Shown: positions 1,292-14,102, counted from the first letter of the whole stretch. The stretch: DNA of 62,982 nt, filler included, from Octopus bimaculoides (GCF_001194135.2; 6 parts of 5 records of this genome joined end to end with filler, not necessarily neighbours in it), one strand, 5' to 3'. The notes: generated by a model not told the origin, from the sequence alone. Program-made: numbers and translations.

Positions 1292-1434
1292 CTTTGGAAA
1301 TTATCAAATCTTTCACGGAAGTTAGGAAAATGACCAAAATGATGCGGACCAACCATTTCTATACCATAGAATGTCAACATCACTTTAAAAGCCTGCAAAA
1401 CTCTTCTTCTGAGAATAGGTTCAGTGCTGATGAT
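1292..1434 (-). CDS. OGFRL1: OGFr-family gene, internal exon (phase 0 to 2): IISTEPILRRRVLQAFKVMLTFYGIEMVGPHHFGHFPNFRERFDNFQ
   Basis: Acceptor ttccattgtttcag|, donor AG|gtaatg. Resembles OGFr RLVRAYELMLGFYGI...RFQNLN (human sequence from memory). In phase with exon 3137-3068. Symbol is family-level only; OGFR vs OGFRL1 orthology cannot be decided. Confidence 0.9.
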
Positions 1435-1548
1435 CTGAAACAATGGAAGCAATTCACTGTTTAGGACAATATCGCGTCAGTATTGCTGGTTTGCAGAATC
1501 GTTTGTGCGCCGGACAAAAAAAGTCCTCGCAAAATTTGTTGCGGTCAA

Positions 1549-1763
1549 GGCGACAAGCTGGCAAAATTGTTAGCATGCCGGGCAAAATGCTTCGCAACAT
1601 TTCGCCTTTATGTTCTGGGTTCAAATTCCGCCGAGGTCGACTTTGCCTTTCATCCTTTTGGGGTCGATAAAATAAGTACCAGTTAAACATTAGCGTCGAT
1701 ATAATATCGACTTACCCGCCCCTCGAAATTGCTGGCCCTGTGCTAAAATCCGAAACCAATATT
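1549..1763 (+). mobile_element. tRNA-derived SINE, family A (head ggcggcgagctggcagaa; body tttcatcctttcggggtcgataaa)
   Basis: Collinear with copies at 9597-10339; B-box-like gttcaaattcc. Preceded by a degenerate second head at ~1482-1520. Confidence 0.8.
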
Positions 1764-2214
1764 NNNNNNNNNNNNNNNNNNNNNNNNNNNNNNNNNNNNN
1801 NNNNNNNNNNNNNNNNNNNNNNNNNNNNNNNNNNNNNNNNNNNNNNNNNNNNNNNNNNNNNNNNNNNNNNNNNNNNNNNNNNNNNNNNNNNNNNNNNNNN
1901 NNNNNNNNNNNNNNNNNNNNNNNNNNNNNNNNNNNNNNNNNNNNNNNNNNNNNNNNNNNNNNNNNNNNNNNNNNNNNNNNNNNNNNNNNNNNNNNNNNNN
2001 NNNNNNNNNNNNNNNNNNNNNNNNNNNNNNNNNNNNNNNNNNNNNNNNNNNNNNNNNNNNNNNNNNNNNNNNNNNNNNNNNNNNNNNNNNNNNNNNNNNN
2101 NNNNNNNNNNNNNNNNNNNNNNNNNNNNNNNNNNNNNNNNATAATCAAATAGTCATGTGTAGCATAGACACAAAAAAAGACCGGAAACCGGAAATTTCGG
2201 AAGTAGGTTTAGTT

Positions 2215-2320
2215 TGCGAATTCAAACTTAGTACTTTATTCTACGACCCTAAGAGTATGAAATCAGTTTGATATCGGCAGAATATGGCAATATATTTTAT
2301 CCAATGTTCTAACGATTCCG
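2215..2320 (-). mobile_element. Highly decayed SINE family A fragment
   Basis: Reverse complement gives gcggaatcgttagaac...tagggtcgtagaataaagtac, matching family A head and body motifs. Confidence 0.4.
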
Positions 2321-2552
2321 CTTATTCACACACAACCCGTTAATAACACTATGTAACAAAATTTTTATTTTTTTTATCTTTGGTCAGTAAATATTATTTC
2401 CTATTTGCTTCTATCTAGAAATCAAAGGAAATGACTATTATTCCCTTCAAAATTTGCTTTTGTAACCTGGACATCAATGTTTTGAAGCTGACCTATTTTT
2501 CATTACATTTCAGACAGGTTCAGCGCCGAATGCTGAAACAGAAATATTGTTA

Positions 2553-2720
2553 TAGCAAATATTCTGCACAATAGCACAGATTTGCTTGTCAGTTGCTTGA
2601 CATTAACTACTTGAGCATGTCCCTTAGTAGCTGGCAAAATGTGCATCCCTGATTATGACTAGGAACAGTGAGGGAGCATCGTAGCCATGTTTTGATAGGA
2701 ATTTTTTGAGGTTTGAATAA
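2553..2720 (+). mobile_element. Internal fragment of the ~550-bp (TAA)n-associated non-coding element
   Basis: gcaaatattctgcacaatagcacagatttgcttgtcagttg...gagcatgtcccttagt aligns with 48770-48930 and with the minus-strand copy at 8672-9217. Confidence 0.65.
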
Positions 2721-10471: not shown

Positions 10472-10795
10472 GGATGGTATGTTGACAGAATTGTTGGAGC
10501 GACAGGCAAAATTCCTTGAAGTATTTTCCCAAGCTCATTACATTCTGAGCTCAGTTACCTCCGAGCTCGACTTTGTCATTCATTCGTCCTTTTGGGGTCG
10601 ATGAAAGAAGACCCACTTGAGCAGTGGTGTCGATTTAATCGTCTAGACCCCTTTCCACTAAAACAATTGCTAGCCTTGATCCAAAATCAAATAAAAGGAC
10701 CGATAAAATAAGTACCAGTTGAGTATCGGGTCTATATAACCGATTTACTCCCTCCCTCTGCAACTGCTGGTCTTGTGTCAAAATCTGGAAGAATT
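10472..10795 (+). mobile_element. Older SINE family A copy followed by a second partial body
   Basis: ctcgactttgtcattcattcgtccttttggggtcgatg, and again ccgataaaataagtaccagttgag at ~10700. Confidence 0.65.
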
Positions 10796-11699
10796 ATTAT
10801 AATAAAATATATAATTTTAAAATTTTACATAAAAAATAAAAGCATTGTTGTTGTTACTACTGTTGTTCTTGTTTTGAGTTGGATGTGCTTGGCTTCAGCT
10901 CGTAAAAGTTAGTTGTTTTGATGGAAATACTTTGTTCTGTTTTCATTTTTTTTTTTAGCCATTTCGTTAAATGGGACACTCCATTTCACCGTGAGAAGAA
11001 GGGAACAGTAAATGCTAACCCTGGGAGACATTTCTCTTACAACAGAGATTTCACCATATTGTAAATTTTAATGTTTAAAAATCATAGCGAGACCAGAAAA
11101 CAGGACCACTAGACCGTATGAAAGGACGATGAGAATGAAGTCATTACGGTTTAGTAACGAAATAGTGATAGAGAAGTCTAGTCTAGAGGAAGATTTTATT
11201 AACAACCTAAGAAAGGCATTTAGGAAACGTATCGGGACCAACATGCAGGCAGTGAGATTGGGCTTCGACTAATATTACAAGTAAAACACAAAAGCTACAT
11301 TGTCAGAGCAAGGGCATGTGCTCGAAAACATGAAGCCATTCGATTGGCTCGGGTGTCAAAGGCATTGTGTGGCACACAAGTAGAAAGGCCCTTTACTATT
11401 ACGTCTAGGGCTAGTTAGTTTGGAGGGGTCGAAGTCCTATTTATGACTGAAACCCTCGCACTCTTTGATCGCCCACTAGAGTAATGATTTCTTTCTCTTC
11501 CCCACTTCTGTGGAAAGAAGGACGGTAAAGCTAACAGTACTGCGAATCCCACTGGAGATAGCCTTCTAGTGGATCCAGACTTGCATAGTGTTGAAGGGGT
11601 GTAATACCGTACTGGATGTTACGAGAATGAGATGGAAGAATTAGTTAAAGATCAAACTATAGGTCCCTCCCCATATAAAATCTGAACACCTAGAAAAGA

Positions 11700-13310
11700 T
11701 CTCATGCTCATCTCCCTGTCAAATGCGATGGTGCTGTGAGTAACTGTGGAGGTTAGAAGACTGAAATGCCATTTGTGTGGAACGATCAACCATCTAGAGC
11801 CTTCTGGCCACACAACCGAAAACACGTAAGGGGAGAGAAGGGCCGCACTCCTGCCGACACCATCGCGGTAACAACAACAACGTGCAATAAGAAAGGTTGT
11901 AGCAAGAGCAGCAGTGAGAGGGTAAACAGAAGCAACAATAACAATGACACCAACAATATCCGCAGCAACCGTAGAAACAGTAAAAACAGCAGCACTAACA
12001 ACATTAACATATAACCTTTAGGCGTACAAACTGCTATGGAGGAAATTAACAATTACAACACCAAAATCTCCATCCAGGCAATATCTTAACCCAGGTCCCC
12101 TTCTCTCTCTCTCTCTCTCTCTCTCTCTCTCTCTCTCTCTCTCTCTCTCTGTATATATATATATACATATATATATATATATATCTGATTTCCCCTATTT
12201 CTCTATTTCTTTCTCTTCCTACATCTATAAAGACATACACACAGAAGGAAACATACACTTTCCCATGTTCGAGTCGGGGTTTTCCGATCATACAACCAGC
12301 CTTTTGTGGCGGAGCGAGGGGGCGGGAATGGCAAAAGTAAAAAATAAAAGAGAAAAAGGAACAAAACACAAAACAGCACAAAATAAAGAACTACAATCGT
12401 ATTCGTCCAAGTGAAGACATAGAGGCAGTGAGAAGGCTTTCAATAAATGTACAGTGAAAGTCTCTGGTGACTTACCAATCGAGCACATGAATATGAGAGA
12501 GATTTCCATATCACGTTAGAAAACCCAGCGTTGTGGCCACGGTTTTTTCAACTAGTGATGTGGAGTTCTGCAAAAAGCCAATAATAGTTGAAATATGGGA
12601 AGTTATGACTGGCTGCAAGGGGAAAAAAGGCTGGATGGTCTGTCCAACGAGTTTTATTGTCATATGCCAGACTTCCTCTGATGTCTATTGCAACAAGCAG
12701 CAGAATGAGAGAATTATCAGTCCTGTGAAAAGAAGCGTGTTAATGCTGCTGAGAAAGGACCCAAACAAGAGGAGTGATTTTTGACAAATTAAGGCCCATA
12801 TCTCTGCTAAATGCAAAGCTCAAATTTTATGACAACGTGTCAGCCTAGAAGTTGGCGCTTTTCATCGATACTCTGGTCGGTGATGTTCAGACATGCACCA
12901 TACCAAAGAGATCTTACTCCGACAGCCATAACCCTACGCGATACAACAAAGAAGGTTGTGTAAGGAACTTGGATAGAGCCTTTATCAATTTAGATCAAAA
13001 GAAAGCTTTCGATAAGGTTGAACAATACTTGAAGATTGTCCTTACCGGCAGTTGGATTTGAGCTCGTCTTCTGAGGCTATATCGTTGTCATGTATAGTAG
13101 TATGCTCGGTAGTCAGAGTGAAGGTCACCTATTGGAACTGTTCAGTGCCATGCGTTCGTTCCGTCAGGGACATTTCTTCTCACCCCATCTGTACGAGCCA
13201 CTACTGCAGAAATTGCAGTTTTCCAGGGGTATCCCATGCGAAAGAGCCATGTCAGCATATACGGGCGACGAATATGAAGGAGAGTATGTGATGCTCATGC
13301 CTTTCTAGAG
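11700..13310 (+). pseudogene. Decayed L1/Tx1-clade LINE: ORF1 zinc-knuckle remnant and ORF2 reverse transcriptase remnant
   Basis: KCHLCGTINH near 11760. RT motifs RPISLLN, QTCTIPKRS, FINLDQKKAFDKV, VRVKGHL...RSFRQG..SP, SAY..D across frameshifts at 12750-13280. Interrupted by (CT)n/(TA)n at 12100-12185. Confidence 0.7.
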
Positions 13311-13819
13311 GTTTTTAATGAAGTGGAATAGCACCAACCACAAATTTAATCGATTCGTTAAATCTTACACAATATGAGCTAACTCAAACAATGAACTATT
13401 CAAAGTATATACAGCACTATTAAAAAAGAGCAAGAATATGTTCTTGCCGAGAGAGGTCCTCCACTCATTGTTTGTAAATTTCTGTGTTGCTTATTAAGTT
13501 TTGCATACTCCTGCTTGATGCATTTCTTGTTAATAATATCCCCTTCTTTCAGCAAGAAACAACATTCTCAGATTAAATAACAAATCGTATGAGTAAATTT
13601 AGAGTAGCGAATTTTATAAAGTTTCGGATTAGGTACCACATACGAAGAACGATAAGGTCAGTTTGTCTTTGTTTCTTTCTTCCTATTTCTAGCGGGGTGG
13701 GACTAACATTCTCGCATGCATTGATTAATATATAGTTAACCTGTGTAATATATTAACCGAACACATTTGATCATAAGTCTTCTCGATCAGGGCTGACCTA
13801 GAGTTAAACAACAATAATA

Positions 13820-13965
13820 CACCAGCGTAGCTGGGTGGGGGGGGAAGCTAGGGGTGGTCCGCCCCCGAGTGGGACTTTTGGGTCTGCTGTAGGTCATATA
13901 TAATTTTTGTGGGGCGACAAACGGAAGGGCCGCCCCAGGTGGCAGACGTTGTAGCTACGCTAATG
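13820..13965. mobile_element. Small hAT-type MITE
   Basis: TIRs caccagcgtagct / agctacgctaatg; 8-bp TSD caataata vs caacaata, 7/8. Confidence 0.7.
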
Positions 13966-14030
13966 CAACAATAGCAACATCCCTGATCACTGAGAACACC
14001 AGTATCTAAATAAAGTAAAGTAAAACTTAC

Positions 14031-14102
14031 CTTTTTGAGTGAGTTATAGAAAAAGAACATAAACATGAATATCAGCAACGCAACCAACATCCAGATTAAC
14101 AT
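14031..14102 (-). CDS. Probable first coding exon of the OGFr-family gene: MLIWMLVALLIFMFMFFFYNSLKK
   Basis: ATG at 14102 with an upstream in-frame stop and a purine-rich leader. Perfect donor AAG|gtaagt in phase 0, matching the phase-0 acceptor at 8465. The linkage is inferred, not shown. Confidence 0.55.

Follow-up and report, generated by a model that had tools for sequence, protein, structure and literature searches.

A candidate N-terminal membrane anchor encoded by the first coding exon of an octopus OGFr-domain gene

The stretch of Octopus bimaculoides DNA analysed here, 62,982 nucleotides long and called the window below, carries on its minus strand the first five coding exons of a gene for a protein with an OGFr domain, the domain shared by vertebrate OGFR and OGFRL1. 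The five exons have GT-AG borders and compatible phases, and their joined product has 195 amino acids. A previous reading of the window, made from its sequence alone and called the sequence-only reading here, had proposed that such exons splice into an OGFr-domain protein, and that a Met-initiated exon of 24 codons with the donor AAG/gtaagt is in the phase that fits the acceptor at 8465. All of these coordinates were confirmed in the sequence, the first junction is of phase 0, and the public gene models agree with it. The parts of the gene are as follows, with a slash marking the exon borders.

14153-14151, minus strand: in-frame stop upstream of the exon 1 ATG; the open frame begins at 14150.
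14102-14031, minus strand: coding exon 1, ATG and 23 codons, encoding MLIWMLVALLIFMFMFFFYNSLKK; donor AAG/gtaagt, phase 0.
14030-8466, minus strand: intron 1, 5565 nt, rich in (ATT)n runs and repeats resembling short interspersed nuclear elements (SINEs); includes a 10-nt gap at 9102-9111.
8465-8243, minus strand: coding exon 2, 223 nt, ending in phase 1; acceptor ...cctag/CCC.
4956-4878, minus strand: coding exon 3, 79 nt, (G)AYIEVILESWAEDFEILQHHNGYIQ(W).
3137-3068, minus strand: coding exon 4, 70 nt, (W)LFPLPRSSKTNIYAQPLTEEERS.
1434-1292, minus strand: coding exon 5, 143 nt, IISTEPILRRRVLQAFKVMLTFYGIEMVGPHHFGHFPNFRERFDNFQ(R); donor AG/gtaatg; the gene runs on past the window.
L001 ~27950-28168, outside the window: sixth and last coding exon, residues ~196-265, about 3.9 kb past the low-coordinate edge of the window.

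The window sequence is 100% identical to the chromosome record CM046605.1 of assembly GCA_001194135.2, and in the GenBank annotation of this assembly the coding sequence begins at the ATG at 14102. The spliced product matches, with 100% identity from end to end, residues 1-195 of XP_014770405.1 (UniProt A0A0L8HQG4), an O. bimaculoides protein of 265 amino acids named 'opioid growth factor receptor-like protein 1'. The gene and protein model is already public, and as sequence annotation the observation is not new. Between the upstream stop and the start at 14102 no second ATG was found in the sequence, and an A stands at -3 relative to the start codon. The hydrophobic exon 1 begins all five public isoforms, which are both of those from O. 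bimaculoides and all three from Octopus sinensis, where the orthologous intron 1 has 4775 nt. Exon 2 encodes a linker (PYYIMTPVMHVTTGSSPSTPDICKRPKC...), after which the OGFr domain begins (NLKFYFNKQPSLPNG); only about half of this domain is encoded by the five exons in the window. Could some coding sequence be hidden in the assembly gaps? Within the gene every gap is intronic: the one at 9102-9111 falls in intron 1, that at 7669-7886 in intron 2, and that at 1764-2140 in intron 4. The colinear orthologue of O. sinensis contains no additional residues, and the motifs are spaced as in the human domain. None of the gaps hides coding sequence. No other credible gene was found in the window, where the open reading frames (ORFs) of at least 110 amino acids are translated microsatellites or gaps, and Rfam and tRNA scans of the window were empty.

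The domain assignment is clear. In the profile search that the sequence-only reading had asked for, the 195-residue product matched Pfam OGFr_N (PF04664) with E=3.6e-29 and 102.2 bits over profile positions 3-118 of 208, the gathering cut-off of this profile being 22 bits. The full-length protein of 265 amino acids also carries PF04664 in precomputed annotation. Of the 36 columns that 85% or more of 90 family members share, the protein keeps 30, in motifs including NLxFY, PNG, YIQWLFP, MLxFYG and RITR; the residues lost are E117Q, H120N, G134K, H199N, I207M and G215D. The introns within the domain coincide with breaks in the alignment to the human domain. By its HMM score, it belongs to the OGFr_N family. 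It differs from the family in that two very conserved polar residues are replaced, at position 117 (exon 3) and position 199 (exons 5-6). The 90 members have E at the former in 97% and H at the latter in 93%; both octopus species have Q and N, and the tandem paralogue and the cuttlefish protein described below retain E and H. As for structure, no credible sequence match to a solved structure was obtained, the top one, a PsaD chain, being judged spurious, and Foldseek gave no structural match at E<=0.001. With no solved relative by sequence or by fold, the fold gives no clue to the biochemical function.

What does the first exon add to this domain? Its peptide MLIWMLVALLIFMFMFFFYNSLKK can be read directly as a hydrophobic core of 19 residues followed by NSLKK, just as had been described. 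The core (residues 1-19) is uncharged and has the length of about 18 or more residues that characterises type III signal anchors, with a Kyte-Doolittle value of 2.61 over 19 residues and a summed Hessa-scale value of -4.6 kcal/mol. AlphaFold2 with an alignment of 90 sequences (mean predicted local distance difference test score, pLDDT, 86) predicts a helix at residues 2-21 (pLDDT >90), a disordered linker at 22-74, and an all-alpha OGFr domain at 75-265 (pLDDT >90). The S/T/P-rich linker TTGSSPSTP pointed out in the sequence-only reading is present in exon 2 of O. bimaculoides and is only partly conserved, since O. sinensis has TTGSSRSRP. It may be asked how easily such an exon could arise by chance in DNA rich in AT and microsatellites. 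On both strands, 366 of 1257 candidate Met-initiated ORFs before a bare GT were hydrophobic; these counts are approximate, as the scan missed in-frame stops in the first 19 codons and some candidates are not true ORFs. When a GTRAG donor is required, exon 1 is the only hydrophobic ORF on either strand of its 17-kb piece. From the sequence alone the case for exon 1 is modest, and it becomes strong once the annotation and the comparative data are added.

The first comparison is with O. sinensis, in which exon 1 reads MLFWLMITLLIFVFMFFFCNLLKK. The ATG, the frame, the donor and the hydrophobicity are all kept after 11 substitutions. In codons 2-18, all 7 substitutions are at first codon positions and interchange F, L, I, M, V and T. 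Further comparison comes from separate genes. Word-indexed protein searches gave only 2 and 5 relatives, not enough to survey the molluscs by name. On the same strand, 34.5 kb downstream, there is a tandem paralogue, XP_014770397.1 (L003 10001-27796, CM046605.1), and O. sinensis has kept this tandem arrangement (L004). The first coding exon of this paralogue has 22 codons and ends in phase 0, encoding MIAVLLFLIFLLVGLVYKYLFS before the donor gtgagt, and its domain exon begins at the same acceptor position as exon 2 of the present gene (PVIM(HCG...) versus PYYIM...). The cuttlefish protein CAE1264559.1 has an acidic tail of 17 residues, a helix of 20 residues and the basic stretch KKKQIKKK, all in a phase-0 first coding exon of 41 codons, and its domain introns are at the same places as in the octopus gene. 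The two proteins are like the present one in that a short phase-0 first coding exon encodes a hydrophobic helix, behind which come a linker and the OGFr domain, and also in their small size (233-265 amino acids) and the location of their genes in local clusters. They differ in being only 28-32% identical to it in alignment. In addition, a further small exon of the paralogue carries a juxtamembrane CCxxC cluster, and some isoforms of the paralogue are without the helix, while the cuttlefish protein has the acidic tail before the helix and a far stronger basic flank after it. As the design is common to three separate cephalopod genes, exon 1 is likely to be real and old.

The cuttlefish contig CAHIKZ030001448.1 (Acanthosepion pharaonis, L005) carries at least two OGFr-domain genes with adjacent accession numbers, CAE1264556.1 and CAE1264559.1. 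Together with the octopus tandem pair, this points to local clusters of the OGFr family in both cephalopod lineages. A homologue from Argonauta hians (P0037) shows 37-39% identity to each of the two octopus genes, with an N-terminus that is aromatic and amphipathic and not clearly transmembrane; it was left out of the evidence.

How does the octopus protein relate to the known members of the family? It shares the same conserved OGFr_N domain with vertebrate OGFR and OGFRL1, but it starts with a transmembrane-like helix, whereas the N-terminus of OGFR is acidic and that of OGFRL1 is a myristoylation motif, MGNLL. In OGFRL1 this motif is followed by an acidic DSTWE stretch, and the homologues P0026 and P0088 show MGNLL...DSTW, while the octopus protein starts with MLIWML.... 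At the other end, it stops at residue 265, right after the domain, and is without the C-terminal repeat region of OGFR. This region, reported by Zagon et al. 2002 (as cited in PMC5876317 and PMC12919962), is long and contains nuclear localisation signals as well as imperfect repeats. In a neighbor-joining tree of 90 domains the octopus protein is on a long branch outside the vertebrate OGFRL1-like cluster; the tree is rough and star-like with long branches, and cannot decide whether the helix had a single origin. The 'OGFRL1' label should therefore be taken as a name given by similarity rather than as a demonstration of orthology.

The sequence-only reading had set its membrane-tethered protein against vertebrate relatives that it took to be soluble, and this premise was overstated. 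The literature describes an association of OGFr with the nuclear envelope. A myristoyl-proteomics study names human OGFRL1 as one of the substrates of N-myristoyltransferase (PMC12955691). A representative search matched 1889 family members, of which 150 were listed and scored. A myristoylation motif at the N-terminus was found in 18 of the 150, including the OGFRL1-like MGNLL... sequences, and an N-terminal hydrophobic stretch in 8, two of which are the tandem paralogue and the cuttlefish protein CAE1264559.1. Helix-bearing homologues also include P0034, P0093, P0100 and P0113. A hydrophobic C-terminal tail resembling a tail anchor was also seen in two or three of them, namely P0141 (a Hyperolius frog OGFR-like protein, RAFIIVLLCFSIYVWLDLWQAYF), P0101 and P0058. 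Another comparison is the effector MiISE6 of the nematode Meloidogyne incognita, which likewise combines an ER-targeting (endoplasmic reticulum) N-terminal sequence with an OGFr_N match (PMC5876317). It differs in that its signal peptide of 32 residues is cleaved and drives secretion, and that it has a domain fragment of 28 residues with nuclear localisation signal motifs (PMC5876317), whereas in the octopus protein the domain is complete and the helix looks like an anchor.

The reading we prefer, with a probability of roughly 0.6, is that the peptide of the first coding exon is a signal anchor that stays uncleaved at the N-terminus, and that the OGFr domain is cytosolic. In such a scenario, the hydrophobic core of 19 residues would be recognised by the signal recognition particle while leaving the ribosome, and the helix would be inserted in the ER membrane, its charge-free N-terminus facing the lumen. 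Everything behind the helix would remain in the cytosol, from the KK pair through the linker of about 50 disordered residues to the all-alpha OGFr domain. The domain would thus be attached by a flexible tether to endomembranes on their cytosolic side, by default to the ER or the nuclear envelope, and the protein would be neither soluble nor shuttling to the nucleus. Membrane insertion, orientation, compartment and biochemical role are inferred in this picture, and the interpretation given in the sequence-only reading is supported at the level of sequence and comparison. An analogy of mechanism is offered by the type III anchors of microsomal cytochromes P450, which the octopus protein resembles in having about 20 hydrophobic residues from Met1 with no preceding positive charge, basic residues and a Pro directly behind them (here KKP), and a globular domain that would be cytosolic. 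There is no homology to them, and the P450 hinge is much shorter than the present linker of about 50 residues.

Several observations weigh against this scenario, and each is considered below with the explanation that it favours. The hydrophobic exon might be a secretory signal, either cleaved or serving as a type II anchor, so that the domain is lumenal in the ER or Golgi or is secreted, and the S/T/P stretch forms an O-glycosylated stalk. The N-terminal position and the hydrophobicity do fit ER targeting, and a stretch such as TTGSSPSTP after the helix would equally suit a lumenal stalk. Cleaved signal peptides have a basic n-region, an h-region of about 7-15 residues, and small residues at -3 and -1. 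Here no basic residue precedes the core, so that both a positive n-region and a cytoplasmic tail are missing, and by a rule-of-thumb judgement the core of 19 residues exceeds typical h-regions. The candidate cleavage site YNS/L has Y at -3, its S21 is L in O. sinensis, and Y or F stands at -3 of the only candidate sites, which leaves no conserved -3/-1 motif. For these three reasons an uncleaved anchor is favoured over a cleaved signal peptide. Orientation is a more delicate matter. The sequence-only reading had derived an N-out/C-cytosolic topology from the positive-inside rule; its premise, no basic residues before the helix and KK after it, is correct, but the charge difference between the C- and N-terminal flanks is only +1 and the rule is therefore weak here, and in the paralogue it is opposite (-1 to -2). 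The value is +8 in the cuttlefish protein and +5 in the related homologue P0034, whose strongly basic C-flanks speak against a lumenal domain, while the N-termini of the homologues P0093 and P0113 resemble type II anchors or signal peptides more. For the octopus proteins the N-out/C-in orientation is thus weakly predicted. Downstream of the helix no N-x-S/T sequon was found in either octopus species, and there are only two Cys in either of them and no conserved Cys pairs in the domain, which does not suit a lumenal or secreted domain. That the signal peptide of the OGFr_N-related nematode effector is experimentally functional in secretion (PMC5876317) counts on the other side. Myristoylation and tail anchors, as found in relatives, work only from the cytosol, and for this reason a cytosolic domain is favoured; we consider a secretory role for the exon improbable, though not to be dismissed lightly.

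Is the helix part of the main product at all? Exon 1 might be transcribed while the main product is soluble and starts within exon 2, or it might be an annotation artefact carried from one annotation to another. Exon 2 has Met codons at 8453-8451 and 8441-8439, which are 4 and 8 codons past an in-frame TAG directly upstream of 8465. Two RefSeq isoforms of the paralogue (P0174 and P0170) begin at the equivalent inner Met and are without the helix, and so is the Octopus vulgaris model of the paralogue (P0173); from these isoforms, products of the present gene without the helix, started at Met 8453 or 8441, are possible. The junction of 14031 to 8465 rests on the gene predictions of others, and we infer its use in mRNA from that annotation. 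Nor do the conservation statistics of exon 1 reach significance: its identity with O. sinensis is 84.7%, compared with about 88% for the surrounding non-coding DNA, and a neutral simulation retained the hydrophobic character in 13-19% of runs. Nucleotide conservation is thus no proof of coding constraint on exon 1. The paralogue exon 1, lying within a region that is locally 97-98% conserved, is equally uninformative on constraint. On the other hand, an artefact or an unused exon would not be expected to begin every public isoform in two species, to keep start, frame, GTAAGT donor and hydrophobicity through 11 substitutions, to be the only hydrophobic ORF of its 17-kb piece with a consensus donor, and to recur as a first-exon design in three separate genes, one of them a cuttlefish gene annotated by another group. 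The comparative evidence argues for exon 1 being real more strongly than the pairwise nucleotide test can speak on it, and a soluble main product or an artefact seems to us quite unlikely. It is less likely still that, as a signal anchor, the helix serves the outer membrane of mitochondria or some other organelle instead of the ER, with the domain again in the cytosol. A helix at the extreme N-terminus, a basic C-flank and a cytosolic bulk are also the design of outer-membrane signal anchors, and the helix of the paralogue is less hydrophobic; but a Kyte-Doolittle value of 2.6 over 19 residues is high and favours the ER, and the basic flank here is just two Lys.

Some other features are found in and around intron 1.

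14205-14370: microsatellite (GA)n/(TC)n, 100-270 nt upstream of the ATG, broken by a 60-nt assembly gap at 14252-14311, 150 nt upstream of this ATG.
13830-13965, minus strand: GC-rich part of intron 1, close behind exon 1, with terminal inverted repeats GCGTAGCTAC...CAGCTACGC.
10784-10716, minus strand: cassette exon of isoform X1, 23 codons, ILTQDQQLQREGVNRLYRPDTQL; borders ttccag/ and CTG/gtactt.
9546-9997, 10080-10279 and 10422-10533, plus strand: SINE-like repeats (families D2-D4) related to the cassette exon.

The microsatellite is at the same place in O. sinensis. The GC-rich stretch is about 95% identical in that species, above exon 1 itself, and may have a regulatory role or belong to a repeat. 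The cassette exon is carried by XP_014770404.1, the RefSeq isoform X1 and the second isoform of O. bimaculoides, and would add 23 residues to the linker between the helix and the domain. It is an exonised antisense of a SINE-like repeat, and its donor CTG/gtactt comes from the AAGTACCAG motif of the repeat. Sequence comparison found no colinear counterpart of this exon in O. sinensis, and it therefore looks lineage-specific.

What does the finding mean for a family named after an opioid growth factor receptor? Vertebrate OGFR is characterised by its binding of [Met5]-enkephalin (OGF). In O. vulgaris, opioid precursors and classical opioid receptors are reported to be missing from the transcriptome (PMC12919962). 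Members of the OGFr family are also present in Naegleria, Chromera and other protists. An opioid-related role of the octopus gene is unlikely on both accounts, and the name 'opioid growth factor receptor-like', as given to octopus genes, is no evidence of opioid signalling. The present case shows a known family in a variant architecture, and its value is in the reading at the level of the family rather than in a new gene. To our knowledge, OGFr is usually presented as a 'receptor' associated with the nuclear envelope and having no membrane-spanning segment. An incomplete literature search found no paper on a transmembrane OGFr-domain protein, and the tandemly duplicated OGFr set of cephalopods with its transmembrane-type first exon, as well as the recurrence of membrane attachment across the family, seems undescribed.

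The helix genes of cephalopods, the myristoylation motifs and the tail anchors, when taken together, suggest that the OGFr domain works at the surface of membranes, and the cephalopod proteins offer a natural system in which this can be tested. A broader scenario, which we offer only tentatively and hold to be somewhat less than an even chance, is that membrane tethering is recurrent and perhaps ancestral in OGFr proteins and is achieved by interchangeable devices. These would be an N-terminal helix in coleoids, acquired before the split of octopus and cuttlefish and expanded in tandem, N-myristoylation in OGFRL1 and many protists, and C-terminal tail anchors in some vertebrate paralogues. If the scenario is true, the conserved job of the OGFr domain would be at the cytosolic face of membranes, unrelated to the opioid peptides that octopus and protists lack.

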